Shown piece after piece: positions 12,424 through 34,606 of a stretch of 64,000 nt of DNA; the stretch's first letter is position 1; each line of letters begins with the position of its first letter. The DNA comes from Paragordius varius (lineage: Eukaryota; Animalia; Nematomorpha). A model generated the notes under the pieces. That model did not search any database and had not been told where the DNA came from. It saw only the letters and a program-made list of their open reading frames with translations. A program made the translations under genes and the position numbers. The stretch lies in assembly GCA_964247055.1 (NCBI GenBank), contig OZ176054.1, forward strand, positions 1,674,001 to 1,738,000. Direction: 5' to 3'.

Positions 12424-15030
12424 TTATGATAACAAAGTTTTCAATATGGATGATACAACAGTAACATTTACACTGTTTCCCAATAGCGCATATCGTTGTC
12501 GTGTCGTTATTTGAGATGGAAATTCTAAAATAGCAAGAAATAAAAAATTAATTCAATTAATATCATAAATAAAGAGGATCAATTTATAATAAGCGAATAT
12601 TATGCATTAAACTAGAGTATTTTGCACTCATGACTTTGTGGGCTGTTATATTTTTAGCATTTTAATGTAAAACAATTATCTAATACTAAATTATCATATT
12701 AAATTTTTCATTTTAAACATACGAAAATTGAAGAGTGTACTAAAAACATCAATGCGGGCCGCACGGTGGACATCACTGCGTTAATATGTTTAAAATTTAT
12801 TATACTATAATATGCCAACCCAATTCAATCAATTTCTTTTAGATATTTTTATTTAGCATAATGTTCCCAAGTTTAGTTAAAGAAGAATGTTAAATTAAAC
12901 TAGAATTGGAGTTAATAATAAAACTAATAATATCTCAAAATTTTATATACTAACAACGTAAATATTTAATAAAACCGAATTTACAAAAATATTAATAAAA
13001 ATAATAAACAATTAAAGTTTAACCAAATGTTTCAGGGTATCCAAGTAAAGATAAAATTTCTTTCGGCGTAAAAAATCGAACATAAAAATCATGCCCATAT
13101 GAAACAAGTGATTTTGTTTTTTGTAAACTCAATAAATAAATGAGCATATTTCCAGGAGTGTCATTATCTAACTTTTCATGATCGATTTCAATTCCATGTT
13201 TGAATTTGTTAGAATCGTACATTAATAGCAAGGATCCGGTTCCTTTGAAATACCGACCATAGCTATAATATATGAGTTTATATGCATATATATATATTTA
13301 TATATATAGTTATTTTTTTGTATTTCAATATTAGACGTGGGTAATTGGATTTGATAGGGTACAATCAAAAATTTAAGAATGAAATAGTTAAAAATTTCAT
13401 GTAACTCTAAAAATAAAGTAGTTGACTAAGAAAACAACTCTTTCATTAATAAAATAACATATTTTATTATATTCGATTATACAAATTGCCCTTTTATATG
13501 TATTATTAGGATGATGTTTGAGCACATACGATTATCACTTCATGCAATCAATATAATGCATTCTTAATTTAAATTTTTAAAATTTTTGAAAAAAACAGAA
13601 TATGACGCATAAAATAATGGATGAGAATTAAAGGACAGGATTGGAACCGGAACCGTTTGTAGTTCCAGGTTTTCATAAAAATTTTGGTTCCGGTTCTATT
13701 AATTTTTTGGTGAAAAATTTCGGCTTTAAGTTTGAATTAACCAATAGTACACTTCATAAAATCGTGATAGTAATTATAATATTTTGATAATGCAACTTTT
13801 CTCTAAAAATTATAAAAAATAGTTTACTTTCATTTGAACGATAAAAAAATGATTAAAAAGAGGGGGGAAAAGCTTAAAATTGTAAAAAAATAAAAATGGA
13901 ACCGTAGATAGTTCCAAAACGGTTCCGAAAATAAACAAACGTTTTCGGTTCCAATCCCCGTTAAAAAATAAAGGAAAAGACAAATACACGCTCTTTGATT
14001 CAATAAAAAATAAAAATATATGAAAAATTTACAGTGGCATATGGCATAAGACAATATTAGTCCATAAAAGAATAAAAAATTGGTTTTTTTAAAAAAAACT
14101 TGTTTCTATATAGACATATCCATAATATCTCCCCTTGTTTTTAAATAAAACATTTTTTTTACTTCTTTTATCAACTAATTTTGTTTAATGCCATACGCTA
14201 CTGTATTTGCATTAGAAACAAAAACAAACTTTTTTGTAAAACAGCAACTGGATGTTGAATCCATGGACACAATATCAACAACGTTAATATTTTTTTCCAA
14301 AGTTTCCAGAGGTAATATGTAGCTATGATTTCTACATTTATCACCGACAAATAAATCTGTCTGCATGTATTTTCCTAACGAATGATAAGTTAAACAAATG
14401 GCCACGTTTGAATGGCTATTTGGAAAATTTTCAAATATTTTATTAAAATCTTTTTGAGCAACCATATAATATCTTAATCTTGAATTAGGTATTAAAAATT
14501 CTGAGGAATTAACCAAATTCTCCTAAAAAGAAATTCCTTATAATTATGTACCTTAAAAGTATATCCGCATTGTGACAATGTTTGAATCAATAAATTGTGT
14601 GCAAGTGATGATTCAAAACCTTTGACATTTTCAACAAATATATATTTTGGAGAAAATTTCAATCTATAAACCTTTATATTGTACTTGGGGAAAATGGACA
14701 ATATATGCTTCAAAGCTTCACACCTTTCATCCGTAACATCAAGATTTTTACCTTGGCGTGTAAAAGGTTGACATGGTGGACTCATCATAAGCAAATTTAT
14801 TTTCCACAAATCTATTTGATCGGCAGATAATTTCAAATAATTATTTAATTTCTTACCTGAATGTTATTTTCCATAATTATAGCGTTAGGAAAATTTTTTT
14901 GTGAAACAATGTTGGCCAAAGGATTTATATCTACAGTTATAAGCTTAAAGTCTTGCAAATTTTTGCTAAGTGCAAATACATTTCCACCAATTCCATTGAA
15001 AAGGGATAAAACTGTAAACTGTTCTACCAT
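12424..15030 (-). CDS. TRDMT1: DNMT2 / tRNA (cytosine-38-C5) methyltransferase, 6 exons, about 355 aa
   Basis: Exons 14857-15030, 14685-14833, 14552-14663, 14230-14522, 13024-13262, 12424-12524 splice in frame (1068 nt). Motifs: I FNGIGG, IV SPPCQPF, VI ENV, VIII PNSRLRY, the DNMT2 signature CFTKNYGRY, RFFTPKEI and X LLGNSVNV. Intron 1 requires a TG acceptor. Confidence 0.93.
12630..12778. mobile_element. hAT MITE family A, partial copy in DNMT2 intron 5
   Basis: Right end GCGGGCCGCACGGTGGACATCACTG matches the family A terminus; left boundary approximate. Confidence 0.5.
13636..13960. mobile_element. hAT-type MITE family B (GGAACCGG-rich ends) in DNMT2 intron 4
   Basis: CAGGATTGGAACCGG ... 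CGGTTCCAATCCCCG; flanks ttaaagga / ttaaaaaa (6 of 8 match). Confidence 0.72.
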
Positions 15031-15399
15031 AGCACGTTATTTTTGTTACATACGATTGAACAACTGTTAACACTTGGATACAACACATTCATTTTAGTCC
15101 TTCGATTATTGGGGTAGTACCCAGGCCTGTTTAAAATTAAATTCTTGGAATCGAAACCATGGCAAAATTTTGCACTTATATAACATTAATAAACCGAAAT
15201 ATATAAAAAAAGTTTATTTAAAAATTCTTGATTTTACTTATTTTTAGCTAAGCCCCAAAGGTAAAAATTTAGTCAACGAGACATGTCTGCAATGGTAAAA
15301 TTGCAAAATATTACAAAATAAACCACTTTATCTATTTATGACAATGTTAATGTAATTTAAATAATAAATTTACTCTTATTTTACCTATAAAATTACATG

Positions 15400-15620
15400 A
15401 AGACGATATTTTGCAAAAATTTTGTAAAATAAAAATGTCGTCGAAGTAAGATGAAATTTTTTTAAAACAAAATTTTATTTAGATATTTTGGCTTATTTAT
15501 ATGATTTTTATTAGGATAGAAGGATAAATTTATATTGGGACCGTTTCCTTCAGTAATTTTTTAATACTAACTTTAATTAAGTCTGGGCTATTTAGATACC
15601 CCGATTTGAATCGAAGTGTT
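15400..15620 (+). repeat. Dispersed repeat also present at about 55590-55815
   Basis: Shared ACGATATTTTGC...AAAATAAAAATG(T/G)CGTCGAAGTA...TATTGG(G/A)ACCGTTTC...TAGATACCCC in the same orientation. Confidence 0.7.
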
Positions 15621-17032
15621 CAGGTAAATATAATGTATAATAAAATTTTTATCAAATAATCCATACTTCTTTGCCTTTTTTGTCCTAGTGTACCTTTTGT
15701 AGTCGGTATTATATCCCAGAGCTCATGTAAACTACAGTTCTAAGAGTATTTTAGTAAAAAAAATTTTCAAACATTGTTCTCATGTCTTAGACAAAAGGCT
15801 TATATTTTATTAGTTTTTGAGTTGTGGAGTCTAAAATTGAAGTTCCATAACACAATTGAAAAAAATAGTTTATTTCAAAATAAAAATAAATCAAGTTTTT
15901 GATATAATATAGCCTAAAAGCTTTTTTAATTTAATTATTTACATTTCTAACCATACAATACATCAATTTGCCTGATGCAATAATATTTAAATAAATTTAT
16001 GAAAAAAGCGGGGAAAAAGTTTATAGCAATTTTTAACATGAATGTTAAAATTTTTGTATAATGCGCCTAAAAGGCAAAAGAAAGCATATGATTAAATTCG
16101 GATTAGTTTAAATACTTTTTAAGATATTCAAATTTCAAATCGCTCTCGAATTTAAACTACCCCAAAAGGCAAAGTGTTAATTTTATATACAGGTATAAGG
16201 AAAGGGTGTAATTGGTTTTTTTCGCTATTTTCAGAAGGAAAATCCTTGTCGTATTTTCACTGTCTTAAGATAAAAAAATTATCAGCACATCACAAAATAA
16301 AAAATACCGATGCTACACTACATTATTGAAATAGTCTTCATTTTTTATCCATCCACTCATAAATAAACAGAATTTTATTGGTGCTTTTAGGTTTCGAAGT
16401 CAAAAGAAAAGTATATCCATTTTAAATAATTGAACTATATATATAATACGCAAATTAGCGCACATTGCCCTAAAAATAATTTTTAACAATGCTAAATTTA
16501 GAAGTTTTAATTTTATATTATAAATTATATTTTGAAAGCAAGCTATAACTATATTCATAAGAAAGTTCTAAATTTTCACATCTTTGGAACAGGCTATTAT
16601 ATAAAAATCAGAGCCGAGATTATACAATAAGTTTGGTATAATATCTGAAAACAAATATAAATTTTCAATATCATTAAACTGGAAAATTTACTGTTGGAAT
16701 GTAAATGCATTCTAGAGTGTTTTATAGTATTTAATCCATACTTGCTGCTACGATTGCAAAAAATAGTAACACGGAAAAGGAGTTTGGAAGGATCAATAAT
16801 TTTACTTTAAACATATATATTTTTAATCATGAGAGTAGAAGGCTAAAGAGAGTATACAATATCTTAACTCGGTTTCGAATTGACAAGCCCCCAAAAATTA
16901 CAAAAGGGGGTAAATAATTTTTTTTAGCAATTTAAAATTCGACGAATTATTTTAACCAAATTTCTTTTTTTTCAGATTAAATGCTCTTTTTAACAATCAA
17001 ACTTTTAGAAACATAAATTTAAAACTATATGA

Positions 17033-17635
17033 CAGGGCTTGGAACCTAACCGGAACCAGCTCGGTTCCGGTTCCACTTTTATTATAAAAATTTTATTTTT
17101 TTATTTAAATTTGATTGTACCACTACATATTAAATACTTCAAATTTCAAACCTAAAACTAAATGCCTAATATTATATTAGTGATACTCTTTCTCAGTTTT
17201 GGGTGATTCGGCTGTTCTAAAAAAACTAATAGTCATTCAAGTTTATTTATCATACACATGTTAGTATATATTGGTCTCCGTTGAAAGGAGTTTTTTCACC
17301 CTTAATTTTATATAGAAAGACCAGAGAAGCAGTTTGACCATCCTTTTGCTTGGTGCAATACTTTTTAAATTAAATAAAGGATTTTTATATGCCATACTTA
17401 GTGTACACTCATTATATATCTTTGTACTTTTACATTTTCCTATTATATTTTTATAATTTGTTTCATTTATTATGCTACACCATGTTTCCTTTACTATACA
17501 TTTGGCAATTTATATATTTGTTAATATTTTTTGGATTATTATTATAATAGTAATTTTGTAAGAAAATTATAAAATCAAAAGTCAGGAACCGACTCGGTTC
17601 CGGTTCCACTTTTTTTGAACCGGTTCCAAACCCTG
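17033..17635. mobile_element. hAT-type element family B, 603 bp
   Basis: TIR CAGGGCTTGGAACC / GGTTCCAAACCCTG; TSD ctatatga / ctatgtga (7 of 8 match). Confidence 0.85.
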
Positions 17636-17926
17636 CTATGTGATATAAAAATTTTGTAACTTCAACAACAGTGGACTTTGTGTTTACATCCCTAATATAA
17701 AACTGAGCCCTATATTACTTTCGAATGGCAAAAGCTGTTGAGTTCCCTATATAAAAATATTGAAAAGAAAAAGAATCTTTTTGTCCCATCATTCGGTACA
17801 CTATCATTAATAAATCTATGAAATATATATATTTATTGAGATAAAAAGGCCATCATATTGCAATTTTGATGTTAAAAAGAGGTTTGGGTTATTTTGAAAA
17901 ATTTGGAGCAAAAGAAAATAATAGTT

Positions 17927-20660
17927 TTATATTCTTCTCATGTCCTCCACTACAACATCCAAATCCGGTTCCAAAGAAATATGCTTACATTCCTAACAAA
18001 TGTATAAAATACGGTAAAAATCAAAAGTATAAAGCAGCAATACTTATTGAAACCTTAATTAGTTGGAATATTACAGTGAAATAGAGAGTGTGTTACCAAT
18101 TCAAATATGTATTCCTAGCAACCGATAAGCTTTACAATAAATCAAGATTCAAATAAAATATTTCTGCCTTTTAGTTTTTACCCTTTGTGGTTATATAATT
18201 ACAATTATTATCGTATATACAAATAAATATTGTTTAAAAAAAAACGTGGAAAATACCTCATATAAAGGGGGATTTTGTGAATGATAATGAAATCCCGTTT
18301 CGCGACAAGTTGCCAAAATATTGATTCCCAAATCGGGGGTCAATGTAAAATATTTTACCCTAAAAAATTAAGGTATATTATTTATTTAATAATTTAATTA
18401 TATATATCGAGAATAAAATATATTTATAAATGTGCTTTTTGAGTGATTTCATACATTAACAATAGCGTATGATATAAGACATATTTTGTCCATAATAAAA
18501 TATACAAATCTAATGTTTTGGGTAGGAATAAAATTATTTAATTTTAACCATTTGTTGTTTTTCACTCATATGCTACAGTATTGCCAATTGGCCAACATAA
18601 ATGTGCGCACTATATATACATGCATGCTTATATTTTTGTGCCACTTTATTATTTGAATCAAAACCGTTTTAATTTTTGTTAGAACGTTAGTTGAAACCGG
18701 ATTCTAAAACGATTCCGGTTTTCTGGTTGTTATAATACACACTGAATATAGATAACAAAATGTTAAAACGAGAGGTCTATAGCGCCGTTGTCCAACACAA
18801 TTGGCTGCATGGGCCACAATCACAAAATATATGGGCATTAACGAGTATTTTACTCAGATTTTAGATATAAGACTGAAATTACTGTTTATATTAACACATT
18901 TTTTGTTAGTTCTTTGCCAAAATTTAGAGAGAGAAAGATTAATTCAGAATGTTAGTTTAACAAAATCAATTTCAATAAGATTTCGTTAAATTATTTGATT
19001 CTCGCGAATTATTTTACAGGGACGACCCTGATCTACTAGAGTATATTGGGAAAAGGAAGGAAAAATGAAAAGGCTTACGATAATTATTTATTTGTTTGAT
19101 TTATAATATATTAGATACAAACCTTTATAAATTATTATATCAAGCTTTTTATCCATTGAATTTTTAATTCCATCAAACTAAGTACACTTTCAACAGCAAA
19201 TTCCAACAATTCTGCACAAGATGATGTAAATGCTAACTGTGAATCAAATCTTTTATTGCTGATCAAAATAAAAACTGCACAAAAAATCAAATTATTCTTA
19301 CAAAAACGATTATTGGAGCTCCAATTCAGGCTGATGGAATTAAAAATTCTAAAAGAGAAGAATTTCATATAATAATTTATCACATTTAATCATTGGTAAA
19401 ATTTGTATCTAATTTATTTAAAATTGCACTAAATAAATTAATAATCAATCTTATCCCTTTTTATAATTCCTTCTTTCAATATACTCGAAGATTGTGATAC
19501 TTCAAAATCATTATCATTATTCTAATTCTATACTATGTTATCAATAAGATATTTGGGTTGTTGCAAAGTAAACATCATACAAGAATTAACTTGGGAATTT
19601 TTATAAATTTTATTGGATCTCTGCATTTAAATTGACCGAACAACATTCTCTCTCTATAAAAATGCGTTTGGAGCTGTTAAATATGGTTTTTTCTTTCACA
19701 TATAGCATTTTAAAGGCTTTAGACAGGGTCATATTGGATATCCATTGTTTTCATGCAAACATCCAAGCACACCCCATTAAACTTTTTAATATCTAGCAAA
19801 GTTTTGTCATATCCTGAAATGGTCAATTCGAAACATTACATGTTAATTCCTCCAAACGATACATGTCAATTTATTGAATTTAAGAGTCCTTAACATTGGG
19901 TCGGTTCAACTCTTTCAATCAAATGTGAACAATTCATAACATCAATAAAATTGTAGGCAAGTATTTTAATCCTAGAGTTAAACCATGCCATTGTTTTGGG
20001 AAATTTGATCCATTGGAGACTGAATTTTGCAACATTTTTGTCCAAAACGTTAGGTATTAATATGCAAAAAGTTATGTAATAAATACCAAAATGGCGAGTT
20101 ATACCGATATAATGCAAGAATATTTCGATCTCCATTCTAGGGAATAATTTCTCACCTCTGGTCTCAGAATTATCTTCCGAAAGATAATATAATTTATAAT
20201 AAGGTCAATAGATGAAGTCAAATCTCAATAGTATTTTACATAAATTATCTGGAATGTAAGATCGTGGTTTATAAATTTTTTCATTTCCAAGATTTTTAAA
20301 TCCATTTTATTAAAGAAAAATATAAATTGAAATTTCTCAATTGGATCGATTTTTGTGTATAGTTTAATAAAAAAATTCAAAAATATAAAAATTGGAAAAA
20401 ATTAAAACTAGCCTGAGCTAGTCTCGTGCAGAGCAAAGTGAAATAATCCAGTATATACTATGTAGTTTTGGCAAAAAAAAATTCAACTAATGTTTCTAGT
20501 AACTATTTTAAACCTAATAATATTAGTAGATATTTTTAGAAACAAAAACTTTTTATTCAATCGATATGTACAATAAATACTAGGTAGTAGGTGCAAAATT
20601 ATTTTGTTCAATCGAACCTAAGTAAATATATTACCTAGTTTTAGCATTTAACCATCATAT

Positions 20661-20693
<33 letters not shown>

Positions 20694-23600
20694 ATTCAGG
20701 ATATAATTAAACAACCAAATAAAACTATATAATACCATAGCTCTCTTTATATTTATATTTACTTATTTTATATTTTATCGTTTTTTTCAAAGTAAATATT
20801 TATTAGAGAAAAAAAAGCCTTCTTACTGTTTATGTTTAGGGGCACAAACTATTGCAATGTATTCCGGTAACAGCTGTTGATTTGGGAATTGATTATGTAA
20901 ATCTACGCTTGAAAGAAAAGCCGTTTGTGAAGGATGTGTCTGTATGTTGCAAAACAAAAAAAATGAAATTATTATATATAATTCAGCAAAAATTATATAA
21001 ATTTATTATAATATAATATTTCGATTACTACAAGTAATCTTTGTCAAACGTAAAAATAAAATTAAAATATAAACTAAAATTAAATAATTTAAATTTTATT
21101 TTTACGTTTGACAAAGATTACTTGTAGTAATCGAAATATTATATTATAAATAATATTTATATAATTTTTGCTGAATTATTCCATATATAATAATACAATC
21201 ACACTTCAGCGTAAACAATATCCAAAAAGGAAATATTTGCTATATATTACCATTTACAATTCAAATTCACCCTTAACCAATTCAAATTCACCCCTCAAAT
21301 AAAAATTTTGTTTAAAATTTAAATAATATTGAAAAAATAATAAACTATGCCATAATGATATATTTCTCATTAATAATAAGTAATATTAGTTCGAAAACAC
21401 ATAATTTATTTTTAGGGTGAATTTGAATTGTTCGAGGGTCAATTTGAACTGTAAATGGTATATATAAGAGATTATAAGCTATTTTTTATTAATCATTTGC
21501 ACGCCATTTTCATATAACAAAATTATGAATAATATTAATTATTATTACTTTTAAACACGATTTGGGGTAAGAGTAGTATTTTTTGATAATAACCAATACT
21601 TAATTTGATATATAAAAGAGTTTAAGATATTACTAAAAATATGTCCATCGTTTTTTAGTGTTATTTTAATTTATTGCATGTGAATATTTATTGGTAAACA
21701 AAAATAAAATTATAATCCAATAATCCAAATAAAATATTATATTTAATATTCTACAGATTACTCTAAAATATTCGAAAAAAAAATTATTATTTTATTTTTT
21801 GCCTTTAGCTCATACAATAAGTTGGTTACCAAGTAGAATTGACTTTAAAGAAAGTTATTTAATTATTTTTTTTTCATTTTTCACAAAAAACATCCTTTAA
21901 TAGAAGAAAATTAAATTGTGATTTTAATCGCTGAGAGATTCTAAAATATAAGAGAAACATTTTAACAGGCAATATATAAAGCTTATTAGGTAAATAAGGG
22001 AATTCTAATCCATGGTTTTTAAAAAATTCCAATTATTTTTTTGATATACCATTTACAGCTCAAATCCCCCTTCGAACCTCTGAAATAAATTACGTGTTTT
22101 TAAATATATATAAAATTACCTAGGTTTTTTACGTTGTTTAATAATATTATACTGGAAGAAATAATAGCCTATCCTTAAACATATAATTCATGTTAATAAT
22201 GAGTTATATTAGCCCGAAAACAAATTTTTAGGTGAAAATGGTAATATTAATCTATGGCCCCTTTAAATTAAATTTAGAAATTACTGCCTCTTATATAAAA
22301 AAAAATACTTAAAAAAATTCAAAAAATAACGATCAAGTAATAATTTTATTACAAACATCAAAGTTTTTTTGTGCATTTATATTTATAATTTAAAAAATAT
22401 CATTTAAGCGAGAAGCGCGATAAGAAAAAAAATAATACATCAATATAATAAAATGGCAAAATAAAAATTAATAAATAATTATTTGTGTAATTAAACATAT
22501 TATTTTACATGGATCCATCCCAGCGTAAGCAGATTTTTCGATTCCTTAAAATATACCATTTCCTCTTCGTTTACGGCGGAAAAACTGTCAGATTTACCAG
22601 TTTGCTTCGGTATTACCAAATGCGTAACCGTAAAAATATTTTGGCACTAGGAAAAATTTTTTTAAAAATTTTACTTTTTTAAAAAATTGATTTTTTTGGG
22701 TTTTGGATTGCGATATGGTGATCAGAGCTATATATATTAATTGGTAATAAACCAATTATATAACATTTAAAACGAAATTAACTATATGGTTAAGGCAGGA
22801 AATCAAGCTTTTCAAAAAGTATGGTTGTCTTTGTATAAAAATATTTAATTCTGTTAAAACTCATTTTGTATATATATATATATATATTAACATTTAATTA
22901 TCACTGTCTAAAAACAAATACCATTTTTCAAATGATTTAAATTTAAACAGAAAATAATTGTGAAAGCAAAAAGCATGACAATACTTACCAATTTACCAAA
23001 AAGATGGCCCCCAGTTTCAATATTTTTATCGGTATTGGATTCGGCTAATGATAGAAAGATTGGGACCAAATTTTTAGGCACCAACATTTTACGCAATCTA
23101 CGGGTAAAGAAAATCAAATTTTTAAGCTGTAAAGTACAAGATTAAGTAGGAATTCTTAAAATAAAAAATCAAATTTGTACAAAAAAATCACAATTATTTT
23201 TGTATAATTAATTTGTTTTTTTATTTTTTAAACTAGTATGATTGTAACAATAATTTTCGTTATAAAACCGATTTCTTATGGACCATATTCAATCGTACTA
23301 AAAAATAAAATAAAATCAAGCGAAAACGCCGAAAATTATACTACATTTTACATAAACGCTATTAAAGTATCTAACCCATCAGTTGGTGAGGGGGTAGGTG
23401 ATTCTATTAAATTTTTAGGTTTCAGTTCACGAGAAGGTATATTGAGATTTTTAGCCTGCAGATTGCTTTCAGGAATTGAATCAGCATTAGAAGGATTAAT
23501 AATTTGATTTGAAGATTGTGGTGATTTGATAGGATGTTCATTATTGGCTAATATATATTTAAATTTAAAAACTATGAAAGAATTAGAAAATTAATTGGTA

Positions 23601-24229
23601 GTACACGCACTTTTATTGTCAAATCATGAGTGTGAAAAAAATATAGATGAAAAAATAATTTTATAATATATATACAATAACTGTTGCTGTATGCGGTTGA
23701 ATAATGATTTTCATTGGTATATAATGATTGATTAGGAGTCTTTGAGGTTACATTTTCATAAAATGATCGTCGTTTCAAATCGCGTTCACGTTCAATCTAA
23801 TTTTTACAATTTTATAAAAACCTGTTGATGAATTATGACTTCCTGTTCTTGAGCATATTTGTTCAGAATTTTAGTTTTTAAAATTTCGGCTCTCGGCAAA
23901 ACATCCTTAAGAGCCTATAAAAACAATTAAATATACTATTTAACGCACATTTTTTACAATATTTTTTTCAATGGTTGGAATATCTTTGTAGGAATGATGT
24001 TCAGGAATTTTTTCAAAAAATAAGCTAGATAATTGAGTAAAGTATACGTAATATATTTATAGTAAAGCATAAAGGCTTTCTCGACGTCCCCTTCTTTTTC
24101 ATATATTTCGGCCATTGAAAGCATCTCCGGACCGGACCGAAAATATTTTATCAGCGTAAATTGAGGTTGGATTTCAACTTCTTGAAAAAGTTGCCTAAGC
24201 CGATATTCTGGATTTAGTGGATCATCCAT
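17927..24229 (-). CDS. STAMBP: AMSH/STAMBP JAMM deubiquitinase, 10 exons, about 390 aa
   Basis: Exons 24048-24229, 23949-24024, 23822-23914, 23676-23796, 23376-23547, 22989-23097, 22509-22646, 20827-20939, 18257-18359, 17927-17992; all GT-AG and phase-consistent. N-terminal [21 protein letters not shown] residues IETGG and [16 protein letters not shown], second Zn site DLH / C / GFHYH. Confidence 0.95.
18783..19030. mobile_element. hAT MITE family A, degenerate copy in a STAMBP intron
   Basis: TGTCCAACACAATTGGCTGCATGGGCCAC start and GACGACCCTG end; interior similar to 2112-2394. Confidence 0.6.
20979..21179. repeat. Near-perfect inverted repeat (about 85-bp arms, about 28-bp loop) in STAMBP intron 7
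   Basis: TAATTCAGCAAAAATTAT...GATTACTACAAGTAATCTTTGTCAAACGTAAAAATAAAATT is followed by its reverse complement with one small indel. Confidence 0.92.
21248..21460. mobile_element. MITE with about 45-bp TIRs (TACCATTTAC...) in STAMBP intron 7
   Basis: TACCATTTACAATTCAAATTCACCCTTAACCAATTCAAATTCACCC versus the reverse complement of GGGTGAATTTGAATTGTTCGAGGGTCAATTTGAACTGTAAATGGTA; TA-rich flanks. Confidence 0.8.
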
Positions 24230-24286
24230 GCCAAAAACTATTTTGGAATATTTTTAAAAAAAATCATCATATTAACTTTTGAATGA
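24230..24286. promoter_or_regulatory. 57-nt spacer between divergent start codons (putative bidirectional promoter core)
   Basis: STAMBP ATG at 24229 (-) and ANAPC16-like ATG at 24287 (+). Contains a small inverted repeat CCAAAA-acta-TTTTGG at 24231-24246. Promoter function is inferred. Confidence 0.5.
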
Positions 24287-24646
24287 ATGACAACCCAACT
24301 CCCTAAACCATTTAAAATTCCATCTACATCTTCCTCAACATTAAATTCTAATAATTTAGAACCAAATACACCAACTAATAACGTGAGAAAGTGTTTGTTC
24401 AAATCCCCAACAAGTTAATCGTTTATTTATTTTTTACAGATATAAAAATTGTCAATCAAGAAGCCGACAAAGCAGTAATTGAAAGATTTATTAAAAGTAT
24501 TTTTTTATTTATTATCTAAAGATCGTACAAATAAAAACGTGAAATTAGTAAAACAGGCTATTGAATCATTAGCTGAAGACGATTGGTTATATACACCGAC
24601 TCAAAAAATATCGCAACCCTTAATTCATAACCAGTTCAAATTTTAA
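24287..24646 (+). CDS. ANAPC16: APC/C subunit 16-like small protein, 3 exons, 102 aa (not in ORF track)
   Basis: Exons 24287-24413, 24440-24496, 24522-24646 with 26- and 25-nt GT-AG introns give one open frame. Ser-rich N-terminus, VRKCLFKSP (recalled human PRKALFTYP), IERFI (SERFL) and AIESLAEDDWLYTP (LVEELEADEWRFKP). Confidence 0.8.
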
Positions 24647-24648
24647 TT

Positions 24649-27600
24649 ATGGGCAAAAAAGATATATTGAAATTTGAGGGGAGTAGTTTTTTTCGGCAAA
24701 GAATTGTTTTAGCCACGCTATCTAATCAACCAATCAAAATTACTCACATGAATTCTTATGATTTAGAGCCTGGTATCAAAGATTTCCAATTATCTTTGTT
24801 GCGTATGATTGAACAAATTTCAAGTGGTGCTTTGATTGAGTTAAATGAAACAGGTAACTATTACAAAACACTAAATATCGTAATTTATGGCGTGGAAAAT
24901 AGGCTACCATTCTGTTAACATTTGTTTTTATTTATAGATGCTATAATTTTAAGATTTGTTATGGTTCATTGGTTTTCACGTAAGAATTTTTAACATTTTT
25001 TTAATCAAAATCTGGGAAATTAATACAAATGATGTAAATGCTTAGTTTTCGAATGGACGATGATTATATTTACCCATTACTCATATGTTGTAATATATTT
25101 TTTTTGTAAATTATTAATCCGGTGGTTTTTCTCGAATTCGGTTTTTCCGAATTTAAAAATGGAATCGTAAAGGTATAATTCAACTGGTGTGCTTTGTAAC
25201 TGTAATTTTGTATTGCTTTCGTTTTCCCCCATTTTAAAATTTGTGAAAAAAATAGGCAAAATTTTCCATTGACAGAAACGTATGACTTATTTTCTCATCA
25301 TGACTCTTTTTTGAGATAAAATATAATTAATTTTATATAGAAAAACTAAATTTTATTTTTAGTTTTAGGGCTCCAAAATACCCACAAATAGTAAGATTGT
25401 GGGAAGATATATTCAACTTGAAACGTAATTTTACCTTAAAAAATAGGATTGAACCGACTTTATTTTGAAAACAAAAAACTGCATTATCATCAACACATAT
25501 ATTAATTAGTTTATATGCACGCTATATTTACTTTGAAAGTTATTATAGAGTAGGATTAATTTTAGGCATATATATATATATGGTTTTTTTGATTGTCTCT
25601 TGTTAATTTTGATTCTCATGGATTATAGCGACAGATTTATACTATAAACCGGGCCTTTTAACTGGTGGTGCATTTGAACACGGATGCTGTATTCAACGGT
25701 CTTTGGGTTACTATTTGGAAGCACTTTTGTGCCTTGCACCCTTCGTTAAGAATCCTATTAAAGCTCGCCTGTTTGGTATAACCAATGATAATGTCGATCC
25801 TTCGGTTATTTTTTTCTTTCTAAAACAGCTAAAATTTTTGAAAAATGATAAAAGTTTTGATTAGGTTATAAAGCAACGTTAGATTTGGTTTAAATAGTAA
25901 TGAAAAAAAAACTATAAATTAATCAATCTAAAACGACTTTAAGATTTTAACCCAAAATTTGATCAAATTTTCGGGAATTAAAATAAAATTCAAAATGATG
26001 GTTGATATTATCAACGAGAAGTAAGTAAGTAATATTTTATGTGATAATAATACAATTCTCGTGTAAAGTTTAATTAATGATAATATCAACATGGGTGAAA
26101 TATTGCCTAAAGGTATAATATTGATAAAATAATTAAAACTAAATATGTTCAAAGAAAACTGCAGTATATCAATATAATATCCTTTTTCATTTTCATTTAC
26201 ATCTACTTTTATGTCCTAGGTCGATGCAATCAAAGCTTCAAGTTTACCCATAATTAAACGTTTTTTACATTGGGATGATGGTGATATGGATGTGCCAAAT
26301 AAATTGCAGCATCCTTTAATTCTTGATATACGCATAGTTCGTAGGAGTTTTCCTATTATCACAAAAACATCTTTAAACAATATGAATGAATCTACAGTCA
26401 CGATTGATCGCAATAGTAAATTGGGTGAAATCTTATTCACTTGTCCTGTGTATAGGACAAACCTTATCTCCATGTATAATCCAATCAATTTAATTCCCAA
26501 CGCGACAAAGTCTACTCTTAATGATGGTATAAACTCTTTAACAGAAGAAATAGATGCCATTAATGAACCATTTTCTGGTCATAATGTGGATGAGAATGAA
26601 AATGAGAAATATTCGGCAAGGGAGAAAGGTGTAGACTCTTGTGATTTATTATCTTTTAAATTGATTTGGAGACAGAAATTCTACAACATAAAAAATTATG
26701 AATTGGTTGGTTCGTTAAAGCGTTTTTGAATACATTAAGTATGTTGGCATCGGTCAGATGTAATGTAATGCCTATATAATTATGTATGAGTTGAAAAACG
26801 AATAATAACAATAATTAAATTTAAATTTCAGTATATGTTGGTAGAGGATTTAAAAAAAATTTACATTTTTTTACCCTTTTGACAACAACCATCTATCTAT
26901 CGTGTATCAAACATACGTAGTTTTTTAACTGGTTATTTTCAGCGATTAGACTTCATGGCGATAAATACAGTTATCGGTCAGATTTAGCCCTTATTATAAA
27001 CAACATTCTGTTTAACACAACATTTATTTATGAAAACTTACGTATAGAAATTTTTGTAATTTAATATTGTACTTGCAAAACATAGCTATCTTAGGGAAAA
27101 TATTTTTTCTAAAATAGGTTTAAAACCTATTATTTCATATAATTGCTAAATTGGGAGTGTCTAACTATTCTTAATTATATATTTTGATAACATTCTTTAG
27201 CAAACTTTTTTTTGCAGAACGAACAAAATATAATCAAGGGTTTTAAAATAAAGAAAAAAGCAGGTTTTTAATTTTCAAATTCTTTATTTATGTGCAGAAA
27301 TGAAAATATCTGGGAAAGAAAAGATGAGACAACGTCTTAAATCAGCGGGGACAGGACCGAACGCATATAAAATTGTAAAGATTCGTGGGATAGCATATAC
27401 TGTACGTACCTCGCCCGCCATAGCTAACCGCATAATTAATGAAGCACAAACTTTGCTTAAGAATCATGGATCTACCAACAATTACATACGTGTCGATAGT
27501 TATAAAAGTTTGTTCTTTATTTTTTTTCACTTTTTACTTTACCGGGGAAAAATGTGAAACCATAAAGATATGTAACGTTTAAAAACTAAGGACAAATAAA

Positions 27601-30600
27601 TATTTTATAATATCTATATAAGGAGTTATCCTTATTTAAACCTTGATTTTCTATACATAGACCGACCATATCATAAAACTATTACAATCTATAATTGGTA
27701 TTAAGTATAATACCAATTAACAACTCCTTTTCTTAGGTTTTATATATTTAAAAAAAACGATGCTTAAAAAATGGTTTGTCTTTTCATTCAATGTTAATAA
27801 AATGCATTGCTATAATTTTACAAATAGCATATTGCCATACTTGTCATTTATTTTGGTGTTTTATCATTAAATTATTTTCATACAAATTTAATTGTTATTC
27901 CTTTAACATAGTTATTGGTAACAATAATTTAGCATTCTTAATGTATTGCAAAATATCCACATGCGCTGTGAAAAAATATTTTTTAAGCTAACAATTGGAA
28001 TAATTAATTAGCCCTTTTCCAATTATTCATCAAAAAAAGACAATACTTTTTCCAAAGGGGAACATTAATATAAATTATTTCAATAATTTAATATTACGAT
28101 GAAAAAAAAATCAAGATTTAATCATTATAAATGTAAAATTAACAATTTAATGCTAAAAAATTATTTTAGCAGTGGTGTATAATATGGTGACTTTGCTTGC
28201 CGCATTTTTGATAAAAAACCAACGGTCTAAATTCAAAAATATATGAGCATTAATAATTTTTTTTATTTGAGAATTTTCCTACTAATTTCTTCCGGGCTAC
28301 ATGTTGGGCATCCCTGATTTAAATTTTAGTAAATGAAAAAAAAACAAATTTTCGGTTTGAAAAATCTTGAAGATAATGGTTGCTTATTTCTTACACTATA
28401 GTTGGAACTAGGATTGTGCATCTGACTGCTTTTTCAAAAAAGTCCGGTCAGACCCGGTCATGACCACTTTTTTCTTAAATTAATATCATGCGATATTGGA
28501 TAAAAATAATGTTCAAACGATACTTGCGTTTCACTAATAATGTTATGTTTTTTCTTAAAAGTTTGTATTATACATTTTTTATATTTATATTTACAAATAT
28601 ATTCAATCAAATTTAATCAAGATTTTGTTTTTAAATGAATTTTGCTACATGTTTATGGCCTTTCTAAATCTTCAAATACATTGTTTTTAATACTGGATAT
28701 TTTGAATTTTTATACTTAGTTTGTTTTACGCTTTCTTTCATCCATGAATTAATATCCAATTATAAGATTTTTTTTGTTTTATTGCACATTCACATATATA
28801 GAATAATTGCATATTTTGCAAAGTGCTCGATTGTTTTGTGTTTTGTAACAATCGTATATGCTTAAATGCTAATTTTATAAGGATGCATGTTTAACAATTT
28901 TATATTGTCAAATTAGCATATTTAAATATTTATTTTATGATAAAAAATGTATCAAAAACAAACTCCTCCTATCTCTTTTTCATTACGACCAATTTTTCAA
29001 AAAACAGCTGTTTTTTAAAATGTTCATGGTCAAAAAATAAATAGTCACTGACCTGGTCATGACCCGGTCAGCACAACCTTAGTTGGAACACTAGTTAGTG
29101 TATTGAAAAAAAACACAAAACTTTGAATAAAAAAAACAAAGTACTGTAAGAAAGGAAAAAATTGTTTATTCCACATTTTGTTGTTGTTTTTTACCTTACC
29201 TTACACTATTGTGTTACAAATTGACCAACCAACTATAATAGTGGGATTTATGCAATTATTAAAATCCATGAAAAAAAATTTTTTTTCTAGAAAGTCAAAG
29301 TGGGCCCACCCCGGGATTTGGTTTATGCCTGTATGCTTACACCTTGAATGGATGTGTTTATTGTGCCGAATATGCTTCATACGCCACTGATAAATCAAAT
29401 AATAATGAGAATGAAAATGAAAACGATCAAAATTATTTGACTAAAAAGACCTTTCAATTAGCTACGCCTGAGGAAATTGCTCAAGCCACAACTTGCCAAT
29501 TATTTAATGAAATCTATATGGTAGGTAAACATTTTTTTGTGTGAGACTTAATATTAATTACAATAAATTTTTATATAATTTTATAATATTGTCCAAAGAT
29601 AACTAGAATATTTTAAAATTAACTCATATTTCAGTTATTGATTCGGATTTTTTATGTGTTACTTGTGCCCATTTTTTTAGTAATTCTGTTGTTTAATAAA
29701 TTAATTATTGTACTTTCATACGAGTTCTTACTGGCTAAATAATTTAAAATATATCTGTGTATAATTTGTCCAATAAAATTCTTGCTAGCCATGATTTTTT
29801 GGGAATGTTTTTTTGTAATAAATAAATCTACCCCATTTTTACGCAAGGAGGGGGGGGGGTCTAGATGAGCGCTTTGGTTTAATCTAAGTCACCGAAATTA
29901 TAAATTAATGAAAATTTACCACTTTTAAATTTTTTAAATTGCCCCAAAGCCCATTTTTATTAATATTCAGATTTATAAATGACATGTTTGTGATACTTTT
30001 AATTCCCGATATCATATAATCCATTCTTTAACAATTGCAAGTCATGATTGTAAATATCTGCAATTTTATAAATATTATCATTATTTTTTCATCTACTTTT
30101 AACTTTTTTATACATTTAACATTCTCATGTACGTCGTGAATATGGGAGACAATAAAAATAAATTTATTAAAATATCAAATTTTTTGCACTCAGGAATTTT
30201 TTATAAAATAAAGTTTAAAATAAAGTAAAACAATTTATTCTGTGCCGCCTTTCAGCTTTATATTTAAATTTGAAAAATATTTTTTCATTATTATTTATAA
30301 TAATGTATTTTTAAATCATTTTTAGTTTTTCTATTCTGTTTTTGTCTTTAGGGCGGTTCAACCGATTCCTGGAATCAAAGCTTGGCTCTTCTTTACATGG
30401 CTTTGGCGTCAAATAAAATTACGCGTATTATGTCAGGCCCATTTACCCCATACACCCTAAAAAATTTGAGATTCATCGAGGACATATTTAAAGTAATCAC
30501 ATATTTTTGCACCTATCTAAGAATACGGACAGAGTATCTTGCTAAATAAATTTATTTTGAGTTAAGTATGTTAAATTGGGCCCTTTACCAACCCCATAAA

Positions 30601-31424
30601 TGAATTTGAATGTCGGTAAATTAGATGATTCATTATCCGCTTGGCTTAAAAAATGAATTTAATTAAATATTTATGATCTAAATTTGATTTAGTATGAAAT
30701 ATCAATTAAAATGAAATATAGGTATTGATAAAAAATAATGATTGAATTTACCCACGAGCTTGTAAGTTGTGAGAATGTATATTTCAAAAAATGATAATAA
30801 CTCAAAGTTTAGGTAGGGCCTTATAATGAAATTAAAAAGTTTTGAATGCTGTTTTTAAAAACTCATCATAAGAGGAGTCTATTGCATAGATCAGGGATGT
30901 TCAACACAAATGGCTTCGCGGTCGCATATATATATACATATATATATATATATATGGGCATTCATAAGGAATTTATTACAGATTTTAAACATAAAACTGT
31001 CAAATGCAAACACAATATAGCAATTTTTTCCAGTTCTTGCCGAGATTGGATAGACTTATTTAAAAAAATTTTTTGGAGGAAAATTTTAAGCATATTTTTA
31101 TAATTTACGTACGGGTTTGTAAAATTTTCTGCATCCTGCACATAAAGTCACAGAAGGCCGCTGACCCCTGATGTAAATATTTTCTTCATAAAGATTGACT
31201 AAATATTGATTGATTCCATAATATAAAATTTATATTCGTTTGCATTTTAGATAAAATACAAAATTGATCGGTATCAAGATGTATTTGAAAGCGAACGCGA
31301 TACTACAAATAATAAAATTCTAAATGATTATTCCAATAATTGTAAGCAAGAATGCCGTCCCGTCAAATATGTTGTGAGTTGTTTGGGATCCGGATTTTAT
31401 AATATAAATAAAACATTAAAATAA
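24649..31424 (+). CDS. RCL1: RNA 3'-terminal phosphate cyclase-like protein RCL1, 7 exons, about 514 aa with insertions
   Basis: Exons 24649-24853, 25629-25804, 26220-26628, 27298-27507, 29291-29520, 30352-30492, 31251-31424 are phase-consistent (1545 nt). Motifs: FFRQRIVLATLS, LGYYLEALLCLAPF, GITNDNVDPSVD, KIRGIAYTVRTSP, PGFGL, GGSTDSWNQSLALL, SCLGSGFYNINKTLK. Confidence 0.95.
28170..28316. mobile_element. hAT MITE family A, short degenerate copy in RCL1 intron 4
   Basis: CAGTGGTGTA start and CGGGCTACATGTTGGGCATCCCTG end. Confidence 0.5.
28409..29081. mobile_element. Non-autonomous hAT-type element with perfect 8-bp TSD in RCL1 intron 4
   Basis: TAGGATTGTGC...GAC / GTCAGCACAACCTTA imperfect TIRs; subterminal CCGGTCATGACC repeats; TSD GTTGGAAC at 28401-28408 and 29082-29089. 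Confidence 0.88.
30892..31170. mobile_element. hAT MITE family A in RCL1 intron 6
   Basis: CAGGGATGTTCAACACAAATGGCTTCGCGG ... CATAAAGTCA...GACCCCTG; TA-centred 8-bp flanks. Confidence 0.8.
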
Positions 31425-31458
31425 ATATACATAAATATTCTCTCCTTTATGATTAATA

Positions 31459-31994
31459 TACCATTTGCACACTTCAAGAGTGTCATTGAACACTTTAAGA
31501 TGATCCATGAAATTTTTAAGTTTTGATTTAACTATAATTTTGAAAGTATTTTTTATTTTATTATTTTTAACCTAATTTTCTTTATTTACCATATATTTAT
31601 TCATTTAGAAATATTTTTAAATAAAACTACTTTTTTTTGTTTCAAACTAATATTTTCCACTTCAAAAAAATTGATATCTTATTTATGTTTTAATAAAAAG
31701 CTATAGTTAATAGCCTAGAAAACTTGTATATTTTATTACGTGTTAAAATTCTATAAAAATATAAAATAAATTTTGGAAAATTAATAAAGATATACGGTTT
31801 ATTAATTAAAAATTGGTATTGATTATAAGCTTATGTTATATTTAGAAAATAGGTTGAAATTGATAAATGATGATACACAAAGTCAAAAACAAATCAAACA
31901 GTTAAAGGGCAAACTCGAAGTGTTCAAAGACCAACTTGAAATGTTCAAAGGCCAACTTAAAGTGTTCTAGAAATCTCTTGAAGTGCAAATGGTA
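31459..31994. mobile_element. MITE family C, second copy, 34 nt after the RCL1 stop
   Basis: Same TIRs and a similar interior to 11601-12086. Confidence 0.82.
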
Positions 31995-33166
31995 TATATG
32001 ACTTGGACTTTATTTTATTCGTTATAAAGAGATTGGGAGCTGAAATTAAAATGTTATTAAATTCCGACGTTTTCATGTGTAAGCCAATAGAAAAGAACCG
32101 CAAACTTGTATTAAAATAAAAACAACAAACAACTTCAAATTTTATTAATTGCAAATTATTCTGATACAGCAAAAGAGGGTGTTTTTTTACAAATTTTTGA
32201 TATTTTGAAAAATTTTACATTTTTCGCTCTTCCATGAAAGATAGATAATCCAGATGTATTTTGAATTATTACATAGGTATGTGGTTTAAAAATTGATTTA
32301 TCAATATAAAATTAGATCAAATATATATTTCAAGAGTCATTGGTTTATTTATTTTGGATTGTTCATTCATATTTTTTTATACCATATCACTATTAAACCC
32401 CTTTTTAAAGTCCTTATCTCATAATAAAATTTCCAAATTTAATGTTATATACTTTATAAATCAACTTTATAAAGATAAAAAATGTTGTTTCCAAGCATTT
32501 TAGTGTGTATCATACTAACACCCATCAGGTATTGGAATTGAAATGCTTTTTGAAGCGGTTTAATAATTCATTTTTTTATTTTTAATTACAAACGCCATTT
32601 TATGCTGTCTTTTATTTAATAATGTTAGGGTCTAATATGGATTTTCTGAGAGAGCGTGACAATATGAAACCATCAAAAACAATTAAATTCCTTAATAATT
32701 ATCAAATATAGTTAAAAAAGATTTTATTTTAATTACTGTAAAAATTGAAAATATACAGACAAAACTCATAGACAAATATTTTTTTCTGAAAGACAACCAT
32801 GCTTTTTAAAATCTTGCTTTTTTAATTATAACTAATTTTTTAAACTGCAATATGTAATTTATTTTTATGCGTATAATTTCCATTTATGCTGTGAAATGAC
32901 ATCTACTCTATATGCATATGAAATTTAAATTATAAGTTATCTGAAATAAATATACCTTGCTTCTTATATATGGACACAATGTATAAAAAGACGTAATAGA
33001 CAATAGTTTGTCAATTGCGTTAAAAAGACAAATATTTAACAAACATACAAAGGTCAGATAAAGGTTTAATGTAAGTAAAGTAGGATAAGTATCACAAATA
33101 TAAATTTATTGCCAAAATCATGAGTCATTCATAATATGAAAAAATAAATTATTATATATATAATAT

Positions 33167-34606
33167 TTATGTTGAGCTTTTTTGTTTCCTGATTTTTTCC
33201 AAAATCAAATTTTTGACGAATTCAAAAGTTATCATAGGATCCATAGTTCCATCAATGTATTCTAAAAAAAGAAAATTATATGTTAAAATTATCAATGTTG
33301 TCCAAATTTGTACAAAAAAAGGATATTTTGCGTACGATTTGGCCCGTGATCGAATGTAATTTAATAAATATGGATTGTGGATTAATATAAAATATGATAA
33401 TAATAAGTAATTCAGAGGATAAACCAGGCTTAATTCCAATTTAATTCTCTATCTTACATCTGAGTCGTCTCATCGTATGTTAAATAATGTGATATTTATG
33501 ATTATTAAATAGGATAAGGTGATGATAAATAGCCACAATATAATGATGACATATGAAGTCACAAAAATTATTTTATGATTTTTTTTAATTTAAATAAAAT
33601 ATGTTTCAAATCATCCACCCCCAAATATCGTAATTTATAAACGTAGGATCCGTAACCGGTTTAAACGACAGCATAAAAGTGTCCTTATAATTAAATTATC
33701 TTTGATTATTTTCACTCTTACAATTAGTCAGTTAAAATCAATCAATGTTTCGATTATAAGTCTTTTCGGGAAAATTTTACGCAAAAATTTTAGGGATATT
33801 GTCAATCTTATTTCATGATTTTACGGTTTAAATTTGGATTCCCAAGCCAATCCAAGTGGTATGTATATATCCTTTTATAAAATTAATAATTTTTAGATTT
33901 TTAAAAATGCGTCATTTAAGTAGGACAAAATAAAAAATAAAATAATTTGAAAGATATATTATTTCATCTACAAACCAATATCGTTTGATTCTGGGCATTC
34001 AATATTCTTAGCTTTGAGATCATTAAGGTATTTAACATATTGAGGCCAAACATATTTATCAAAGTTTTCGGGCGGTTCAGGTGGTTCATATGTACGCATT
34101 CTAATTTATAAGAAAATATAATATTTTTTTAACGGATATTGTAGTAAAATTCCTAAATATTTAAAATTTACCGGCGGCGTCTTCGACATTCATAATAATT
34201 TAGGGTTAAAAAAATTTTAAGGTCAAATATTGACGTCAGTGAAGATTGAAATAAAAGAATCCCTTCGATAATTAAAATGAATGACGTATTTTGGAGATTC
34301 GAACAACATTCGTCGACATCCGTTTTAAGTTTTTCCCAATCAAAAGCATCCAATTCTAATAATATAAAATAATAAATTAACCATCCCAATTGTGATAACA
34401 AATTGTGTCATCGTATTTAAGAAGATTAATATCCTGTGATTTTAAAAAATCTTACTTTATAATAATGATCAACACTAAATATTTTTGAATTCACAAAGTT
34501 TTTTTGCAATTTTTCTGCCAAACACGATTTTCCACCATTTGTCACTCTTAATTATAAATTATTTATATTACCCACTAATGCCAATTATTAAAATTGGATT
34601 GTACAT
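33167..34606 (-). CDS. NMRK1: Nicotinamide riboside kinase, 6 exons, about 193 aa
   Basis: Exons 34572-34606, 34456-34546, 34382-34433, 34172-34355, 33976-34100, 33167-33261; introns 25, 22, 26, 71 and 714 nt. P-loop IIGISGVTNGGKS, ILIIEGILLF, ECRRRRMRTYEPPEPPENFDKYVWPQY, YIDGT. Confidence 0.93.

Follow-up and report, generated by a model that had tools for sequence, protein, structure and literature searches.

We analyzed a window of 64,000 nt from the hairworm Paragordius varius (contig OZ176054.1, positions 1,674,001 to 1,738,000) that contains predicted DNMT2, STAMBP, ANAPC16-like, RCL1, and NMRK genes, together with GPCR and BMP genes. An Rfam search of the window returned no RNA genes. 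Four of the genes carry candidate micro-introns, 11 in all, with lengths from 21 to 34 nt (median, 25 nt) and AT contents of 74–92%; the positions and sizes given for them in a preliminary description of this DNA were all exact. GT forms the 5′ end in all 11 and AG the 3′ end in 10, the exception being DNMT2 intron 1 (GT..TG). The splice motif is otherwise reduced, with A at position 3 in seven of the 11 and little other conservation. Excision yields complete reading frames of 355 aa (DNMT2), 390 aa (STAMBP), 164 aa (NMRK), and 102 aa (ANAPC16-like), and the predicted spliced products are full-length and contain conserved motifs. If retained, 10 of the 11 segments would break the frame, nine of them with a stop within 1-57 nt. 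By the features of U2-type GT-AG introns, the segments have the terminal dinucleotides, DNMT2 intron 1 excepted at its 3′ end, and their removal restores a continuous homologous frame, with homology at the junction for DNMT2, STAMBP intron 1, and NMRK introns 1 and 2. RNA runs checked with sampled sequence words gave zero matches. The host genome is very AT-rich.

The DNMT2 gene, on the reverse strand, begins with intron 1 (14834-14856, 23 nt, phase 0), intron 2 (14664-14684, 21 nt, GT..AG, phase 2), and intron 3 (14523-14551, 29 nt, GT..AG, phase 0). Introns 4 (13263-14229, 967 nt) and 5 (12525-13023, 499 nt) occupy 12525-14229 together with the intervening exon 5. Using abalone (Haliotis) and horseshoe crab (Tachypleus) loci as outgroups, we found that all five introns match Haliotis introns by alignment column and phase; the position and phase common to orthologs, another feature of U2-type introns, hold for three of three micro-introns and two of two long ones, introns 4 and 5 both lying at orthologous positions. 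The Haliotis counterparts are 673-3129 nt long, and four of the five introns are matched in Tachypleus. Intron 1 shares column and phase with a 1084-nt Haliotis intron and an 18573-nt Tachypleus intron, the ortholog of intron 2 is present in both outgroups, and intron 3, which an ab initio path search also finds, matches a 1149-nt Haliotis intron in place and phase. Because they coincide with outgroup introns, the tiny DNMT2 introns would be old introns that have since shrunk. Neither outgroup gene has tiny introns at its 5′ end: the Haliotis introns (1068, 1084, 673, 1149, 3129, 2917, and 836 nt) show no polarity, and those of Tachypleus begin with 4414, 18573, and 4700 nt and end with 295 nt.

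Two DNMT2 micro-introns are unusual. For intron 1, no AG gives the length of 2 mod 3 that the frame demands; only GT-TG or GG-TT borders work. We rejected an intron 1 ending at AG, since the sole downstream AG gives a 45-nt segment and a broken frame. Intron 2, at 21 nt, is the only one of the 11 with a length that is a multiple of three. It has no in-frame stop, and the seven amino acids it would encode are missing from homologs and from the Pfam profile.

The nearest DNMT2 matches are from mites, a mermithid nematode (Romanomermis), Tachypleus, and Haliotis, with no flatworm among them. A full representative search with the DNMT2 exons returned distant DNMT2s alone, with identity of at most 56%. 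Loci of relatives, sought with a DNMT2 exon ORF, a 345-aa C2-protein ORF, and STAMBP exon 1, gave no matches, and searches of public collections with the DNMT2 exons, the C2-protein ORF, and STAMBP exon 1 found no protein of the source genome.

STAMBP, also on the reverse strand, starts with three GT..AG micro-introns: intron 1 (24025-24047, 23 nt, phase 2), intron 2 (23915-23948, 34 nt, phase 0), and intron 3 (23797-23821, 25 nt, phase 0). Exon 1 aligns through residue 68 of human STAMBP and exon 2 from residue 69, while introns 2 and 3 were placed by frame restoration and the ab initio path; the ab initio splice-path search found all three. Introns 4-9 and the intervening exons 5-9 occupy 17993-23675 and comprise intron 4 (23548-23675, 128 nt), intron 5 (23098-23375, 278 nt), intron 6 (22647-22988, 342 nt), intron 7 (20940-22508, 1569 nt), intron 8 (18360-20826, 2467 nt), and intron 9 (17993-18256, 264 nt). 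The Pfam JAB profile spans the 1569-nt intron, matching at profile positions 43-92 and then 91-117.

Two MITE-like foldbacks lie at 20994-21460 within intron 7, one at 20994-21161 with 75-nt arms that are 93% complementary and one at 21248-21460 with 66-nt arms. We measured word depth over 19860-25859 in four genomic DNA runs (X1, X3, X5, and X6), which were colinear through the long introns. Depth in the foldback bins was 1.3e5 to 4.2e6 versus ~300-500 elsewhere, and MITE-like foldbacks at 1e3-1e4-fold depth are confined to long introns. The earlier statement that later introns carry MITEs is borne out only in STAMBP introns 6 and 7, through their depth spikes and, in intron 7, also through the foldbacks; the 71-, 128-, and 278-nt introns are without a high-copy repeat. 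As BLAST of the long introns within the window gave only TA-rich low-complexity matches, the evidence for MITEs comes from STAMBP only, from its read depth and its foldbacks.

On the forward strand, the ANAPC16-like gene contains intron 1 (24414-24439, 26 nt), whose removal gives the 102-aa ORF, and intron 2 (24497-24521, 25 nt), placed by frame restoration only; both are GT..AG and phase 1. Pfam and PDB searches returned no match to ANAPC16 (atlas lead, 0.63), and we assign the 102-aa protein to ANAPC16 only weakly. The adjacent RCL1 gene has a different beginning. Its intron 1 (24854-25628, forward strand, 775 nt, phase 1) starts 205 nt into the CDS, and the exons on its two sides match Pfam RTC positions 2-56 and 63-134. 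This intron, absent from the preliminary description, is an exception to the tiny introns found near starts and argues against "first introns are tiny" as a simple rule.

Between the first long introns of STAMBP and RCL1 lies a compact island of 1178 nt (23676-24853) in which all introns are micro-introns. It runs from STAMBP exons 1-4 across a divergent spacer of 57 nt and the entire ANAPC16-like gene to RCL1 exon 1, which a spacer of 2 nt separates from the ANAPC16-like gene. Measured from the ANAPC16-like ATG, RCL1 intron 1 starts at 567 nt; measured from the STAMBP ATG, the first long STAMBP intron starts at 554 nt, making the island symmetric about the divergent spacer. Contigs from other samples (n = 2) had zero gaps over 23744-24870, versus 3-18 gap letters per 230-410 nt in the adjoining long-intron DNA of the same two samples.

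NMRK, on the reverse strand, also begins with three GT..AG micro-introns. Intron 1 (34547-34571, 25 nt, phase 2) interrupts the P-loop between GISG and VTNGGKS. Exon 2 corresponds end to end to residues 11-40 of human NMRK1, and intron 2 (34434-34455, 22 nt, phase 0) begins exactly where this match stops. Intron 3 (34356-34381, 26 nt, phase 1) was placed by frame restoration, and the exon downstream matches NMRK1 residues 93-129. Intron 4 (34101-34171, 71 nt) is the shortest outside the micro class. The gene upstream of NMRK has a 24-nt candidate at its 3′ end, which did not pass the frame check; a 40-nt candidate (34810-34849) is without homology.

The 24 modeled introns fall into two size classes, 21-34 nt and 71-2467 nt (13 introns), with none between. 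As first described, tiny introns lie at gene 5′ ends and long ones follow in the window, and the range given for later introns was recovered as 71, 128, 264, 278, 342, 499, 967, 1569, and 2467 nt. Rough estimates for the other RCL1, GPCR, and BMP introns run from hundreds of nucleotides to about 3.4 kb. All introns of ≤34 nt are 35-479 nt (genomic) from an ATG and within CDS positions 35-435; introns farther inside genes than this 35-479-nt zone are each at least 128 nt. Intron length increases with CDS position (Spearman rho, 0.74). Micro-introns form runs of two or three from intron 1 onward in all four genes, and they all precede the long introns in the three informative genes, the only genes on which the polarity statistics are based. 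The chance of this arrangement is 1/10 x 1/84 x 1/4 = 3e-4 if order is free, and p = 0.125 (1 in 8) for a 5′ cluster in three of three genes under a clustered, two-block null.

Of the earlier interpretation, the bimodal, 5′-polarized layout is supported in the window, with the tiny class in the first ~0.5 kb, but the argument for filtering by NMD does not. A single multiple of three among 11 lengths is not significant (p = 0.075) and, as the 21-nt intron has no in-frame stop, NMD could not police its retention. ORF-joining and codon-score dynamic-programming scans found STAMBP introns 1-3 and DNMT2 intron 3 again; for further micro-introns, reversed-sequence controls scored about as high as the real strands. 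A candidate 30-nt intron lies in the BMP gene, ~586 nt from the putative ATG.

Similar layouts have been described in Platyhelminthes, in Opisthorchis felineus and other species (Ershov et al., 2019; PMC6530080) and in Gyrodactylus salaris (Hahn et al., 2014; PMC4040987). As in our window, flatworm intron lengths show two modes in a genome that is rich in repeats and also contains kb-sized introns, microintrons adjoin one another in clusters and prefer the neighborhood of the transcription start site (TSS) or 5′ end (in Gyrodactylus, ordinal positions 1-2) without any known special motif, and gene pairs are tight and possibly polycistronic (PMC6530080, PMC4040987). However, the short mode in flatworms is 32-37 nt, with an extra 90-bp peak in Opisthorchis, versus ~25 nt (range, 21-34) here, and by its best DNMT2 matches, from ecdysozoans and a mollusc, our host is not a platyhelminth. 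The flatworm work also has genome-wide statistics and RNA support, whereas our gene models are from DNA alone. The window thus has the two size classes, the adjacency, and the 5′ location (measured from the ATG) without the 32-37-nt mode or the platyhelminth host: the same kind of pattern, in another lineage and at another size.

Ultra-short introns are also known from Dicyemida and myxobolid Myxozoa (Hadjez et al., 2026; PMC13644364). These have a median of 22-27 bp, splice signals close to GTa...AG, and conserved ancestral positions, and short introns lie beside short introns, with clustering in Henneguya (PMC13644364). Our median of 25 nt and reduced splice motifs agree. In those animals, however, nearly all introns are tiny and genomes are compact (PMC13644364), whereas in our window they form a minority tied to position, alongside introns of 0.1-2.5 kb carrying MITEs, and high-copy repeats are present. 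A 5′ bias of ultra-short introns is not described in the main text of PMC13644364. The background in the preliminary description was incomplete, as flatworm 5′ microintrons and myxobolid introns of <30 bp were already published (PMC6530080, PMC4040987, PMC13644364).

The window appears to show a known layout, that of flatworm 5′ microintrons, in a new animal lineage, with a short class below 30 nt. To our knowledge, animal introns of <30 nt have been published for two lineages only, dicyemids and myxobolid myxozoans, and we know of 5′-clustered microintrons only in flatworms. Both features in the repeat-rich genome of another lineage would show repeated evolution without genome compaction. In practice, the default minimum intron lengths of gene finders and read aligners will break precisely the 5′ ends of such genes, so that some of the gene losses reported for genomes of this kind could be annotation artefacts. 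The hairworm genome report that we consulted gives a BUSCO completeness of 71.6% and nowhere mentions introns.

With slightly better than even confidence, we propose that all 11 segments are true spliceosomal introns that occupy ancestral sites, shrank to approximately minimal length, and survive only near promoters. Ancestral introns would shrink to about the minimum (median, 25 nt), and such minimal introns would persist only in a promoter-proximal zone of ~0.45-0.8 kb. The compact promoter-proximal zones have intergenic spacers of 2, 24, and 57 nt and no repeats. Outside the zone, introns would be longer, some of them inflated by high-copy foldback transposons. The cause is most likely selection on DNA near the TSS combined with intron-definition splicing: purifying selection would act against insertions and length change near the transcription start, and minimal introns there would be spliced efficiently by intron definition. 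The zone could equally be a splicing requirement instead of selection on DNA.

One version of such a requirement, possible but doubtful in our view, is a cap- or promoter-proximal splicing mode in which introns of ~25 nt are spliceable only near the cap and initiating RNA polymerase II. Shrinkage to the minimum would then be tolerated only in the first few hundred nucleotides of the transcript, the constraint being on RNA processing and not on DNA. Unbroken runs from intron 1, confined to CDS positions 35-435, fit this mode, and intron definition at 5′ ends is the preference proposed by the flatworm authors (PMC6530080). It leaves the minimal spacers (2-57 nt) of the same zones unexplained, however, and beyond the zone introns grow gradually (128, 278, and 342 nt) with no jump to a second optimum. 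Co-transcription of RCL1 from the ANAPC16-like promoter (stop-ATG gap, 2 nt) would reconcile its long first intron with the mode; if RCL1 has its own cap, that intron contradicts it. A reading that we consider unlikely is that intron size is set by distance from the promoter, not by ordinal position or the gene's own start, such that only minimal introns and spacers are tolerated up to ~0.55 kb from a (bidirectional) promoter in both directions, even across cistron borders (ANAPC16-like into RCL1). If true, it would point to a promoter-proximal processing or chromatin domain, convergent in flatworms and an ecdysozoan-like lineage, and to a floor below 30 nt for spliceosomal intron length in an animal whose genome is not compact.

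It is also quite unlikely that the polarity is an artefact of sampling and reading, with micro-introns distributed along whole genes genome-wide and the pattern produced by ATG-first reading, clustering, and the use of three genes. The two-block null (p = 0.125), the low power of the unbiased scans, and the possible 30-nt BMP intron at ~586 nt would all be compatible with this. Against it, 5′ polarity was measured genome-wide in flatworms (PMC6530080, PMC4040987), the free-permutation probability is 3e-4, and the downstream exons of DNMT2, STAMBP, NMRK, and RCL1 align as single unbroken blocks with orthologs or profiles, so these genes have no hidden micro-introns. That the segments are not introns, being instead retained coding or frameshifting sequence of decaying genes or assembly errors, is very improbable. 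One segment does end in TG, the 21-nt one preserves the frame and contains no stop, and the public protein collections that we searched yielded no protein of the source genome. Yet 10 of 11 segments break the frame (in nine cases a stop follows within 1-57 nt), the three DNMT2 segments fall exactly on ancient intron positions, the predicted products of splicing are of full length and retain conserved motifs, and the STAMBP and ANAPC16-like segments have the same length in independent DNA contigs from other samples.

The usual eukaryotic rule is that first introns are the longest. The genes in our window resemble this rule in that intron length depends on position, but the sign is opposite. The Tachypleus DNMT2 gene obeys the rule: its first introns measure 4414 and 18573 nt and its last 295 nt.

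We scripted complete gene models for four loci from the sequence of the window, which has a GC content of 21-36% per 2-kb bin, mostly ~25%. DNMT2 (15030 to 12424, minus strand, 355 aa) contains introns, in 5′ to 3′ order, of 23, 21, 29, 967, and 499 nt, and STAMBP (24229 to 17927, minus strand, 390 aa) contains introns of 23, 34, 25, 128, 278, 342, 1569, 2467, and 264 nt. The ANAPC16-like gene (24287-24646, plus strand, 102 aa) has introns of 26 and 25 nt, and NMRK (34606 to 33968, minus strand, 164 aa) has introns of 25, 22, 26, and 71 nt. Eleven of these introns are 21-34 nt long: 14834-14856, 14664-14684, and 14523-14551 in DNMT2; 24025-24047, 23915-23948, and 23797-23821 in STAMBP; 24414-24439 and 24497-24521 in the ANAPC16-like gene; and 34547-34571, 34434-34455, and 34356-34381 in NMRK. 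All 11 coordinates in a preliminary description proved exact when we re-read the loci, and the gene models returned the same extremes, 71 and 2467 nt, for the later introns. Ten of the 11 micro-introns are bounded by GT and AG. The exception is DNMT2 intron 1 (GT..TG), for which no AG-ending alternative preserves the reading frame. Micro-intron AT content is 74-92%, and the 5′ splice signal extends scarcely beyond GTa. Sequence and homology confirm the 11 segments as predicted spliceosomal introns.

The DNMT2 gene is intact, with every catalytic motif kept. When the exon 2-3 reading frame was used as a query against 1.84 billion representative proteins, all matches were distant (≤56% identity; mites, the mermithid Romanomermis, horseshoe crab, and abalone). 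Nearly all homologues were 6-7 residues shorter over the stretch that holds the 21-nt segment, and the Pfam profile revealed the same 7-residue excess there. We mapped the exons of the abalone (Haliotis) and horseshoe crab (Tachypleus) genes exactly and aligned their proteins with the window DNMT2. All five window introns share column and phase with abalone introns (1084, 673, 1149, 3129, and 836 nt, respectively), and four of the five are matched in horseshoe crab. This sharing indicates that the 23-, 21-, and 29-nt segments, including the one ending in TG, are ancient introns, as judged by alignment, that have since shortened. Since the segments lie at orthologous intron positions, insertions, errors, and coding sequence are ruled out as explanations. 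The gene lacks two introns common to abalone and horseshoe crab: the first ancestral intron (phase 1, alignment column 39) and a phase 0 intron at columns 365-367.

The evidence is thinner for the other three genes than for DNMT2. STAMBP exon 1 matches the human protein as far as residue 68, the best PDB match of exon 2 is human STAMBP from residue 69, and a codon-score path search independently found all three micro-introns. NMRK exon 2 corresponds end to end to residues 11-40 of human NMRK1, with only NMRK1 among the matches, and exon 4 matches residues 93-129. The ANAPC16 identity of the 102-aa product is weak: it had no match in Pfam or PDB, and the first named atlas cluster has the ANAPC16 family (score 0.63). 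Its two introns were placed solely by frame restoration.

As the preliminary description stated, the tiny introns lie near start codons. All 11 are located 35-479 nt from the ATG in genomic distance (CDS positions 35-435), while all introns at CDS position 472 or beyond are at least 128 nt long; the 71-nt NMRK intron is at CDS position 362. Intron length correlates with CDS position (Spearman rho 0.74). Each downstream exon of DNMT2, STAMBP, NMRK, and RCL1, the plus-strand gene 3′ of the ANAPC16-like gene, is one unbroken match to orthologues or profiles and thus contains no hidden micro-intron. If order within a gene is free, the probability that the micro-introns all come first is 1/10 × 1/84 × 1/4, or ~3e-4. 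Tiny introns are reported to cluster together in Henneguya (PMC13644364), and if they merely cluster, the fair null is a coin flip per gene (p = 0.125). The DNMT2 orthologues of abalone and horseshoe crab exhibit no 5′ polarity of intron length.

Genes with long first exons had been described as free of micro-introns. In the GPCR, C2-domain, and BMP genes, whose first exons span at least ~0.6-1.7 kb, none was confirmed, but the BMP gene holds an unverified candidate (61138-61167; 30 nt, GT..AG, 90% AT, with an in-frame TAA) ~586 nt from the putative ATG. With it, the first exon would gain ~30 codons and end at a GTAAGA donor near 61258. The BMP prodomain had no Pfam match, and the candidate is without homology support. 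The proposal that nonsense-mediated decay (NMD) filters micro-intron lengths is unsupported. One of 11 lengths is divisible by three (one-sided p = 0.075), and the one in question, the 21-nt DNMT2 intron, lacks an in-frame stop, contrary to the prediction of an NMD filter.

The micro-introns of STAMBP and the ANAPC16-like gene fall within a compact island of 1.18 kb (23676-24853) that comprises four STAMBP exons, a divergent spacer, the entire ANAPC16-like gene, and RCL1 exon 1. As the divergent start codons are just 57 nt apart (24230-24286), extreme shortness is required of the bidirectional promoter and of both 5′ UTRs. The first long intron begins 554 nt from the STAMBP ATG and, on the other side, 567 nt from the ANAPC16-like ATG. 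The latter, RCL1 intron 1 (24854-25628; 775 nt), is the exception among introns near starts, lying 205 nt into its CDS. The RCL1 ATG is 2 nt past the ANAPC16-like stop (24644-24651), an arrangement that is operon-like or bicistronic; if the two genes are co-transcribed, this long first intron would be ~570 nt into the transcript. An AG is present 18 nt upstream of the RCL1 ATG.

The NMRK ATG similarly follows the stop of an upstream minus-strand gene (34631-35040; no Pfam or atlas match) by 24 nt. In that gene, a candidate 40-nt GT..AG segment (34810-34849) would link two open frames at the 3′ end; if genuine, it would place a very short intron at the 3′ terminus of a gene, beside its neighbour's promoter. 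Chains like this junction also occur in reversed-sequence controls.

The sequencing runs that contain window DNA are genomic, and their contigs are colinear across micro-introns and long introns alike; words sampled from the window were not found in the listed RNA runs. Across 23744-24870, contigs of two other samples carry 5-12 base differences and no gaps, whereas adjoining long-intron DNA carries 12-22 differences and 3-18 gap letters per 230-410 nt. Contigs from all four samples break or diverge at ~23744-23765, within STAMBP exon 4, a low-complexity linker, and indels of 6 and 18 nt lie nearby (23565, 23678). Neither word-index protein searches nor the full representative search found a protein encoded by this genome or by a close relative; the loci may thus lack public gene models or have broken ones.

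The later introns had been described as carrying MITEs. Two long introns do contain very high-copy repeats (depth 1.3e5 to 4.2e6, where the baseline is ~300-500), and depth spikes in STAMBP intron 7 (20940-22508) fall on the foldbacks 20994-21161 and 21248-21460 (arms of 66-75 nt), but the 71-, 128-, and 278-nt introns have no high-copy repeats. Word depth over segments 20860-21659, 22060-22259, and 22660-22859 exceeds the local baseline 1e2- to 1e4-fold in the DNA of four samples, which marks them as very high-copy repeat families.

Together, the island layout, the indel contrast, and the repeat placement favour a promoter-proximal zone with a length constraint. Such a constraint could reflect selection on the DNA or a splicing requirement, both raised in the preliminary description; the same facts fit either and do not separate them. 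The preliminary interpretation is supported in part.

Flatworm papers describe 5′ microintrons, and a 5′-polarised two-class intron system is therefore of a kind already published. In Gyrodactylus, a 32-bp mode predominates at intron ordinal positions 1-2, and the short class favours gene starts, as in the window (PMC4040987). The novelty lies in which lineage carries it and in how small its short class is. Among 51 animal genomes surveyed in 2026, introns <30 bp were reported solely from myxobolid myxozoans and Dicyema, and nematomorphs do not figure in the main text of that survey (PMC13644364). In composition, the window fits the assembly of Gordionus montsenyensis, which has 26.9% GC, a repeat share of 64% dominated by DNA transposons, and a BUSCO completeness of 71.6%; introns go unmentioned in its genome report. 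In the window, a GC-richer segment at 37000-40100 (31-36%) is internally repeated (3-6 copies by self-BLAST), carries long open frames in both orientations, and resembles clustered transposon remnants.
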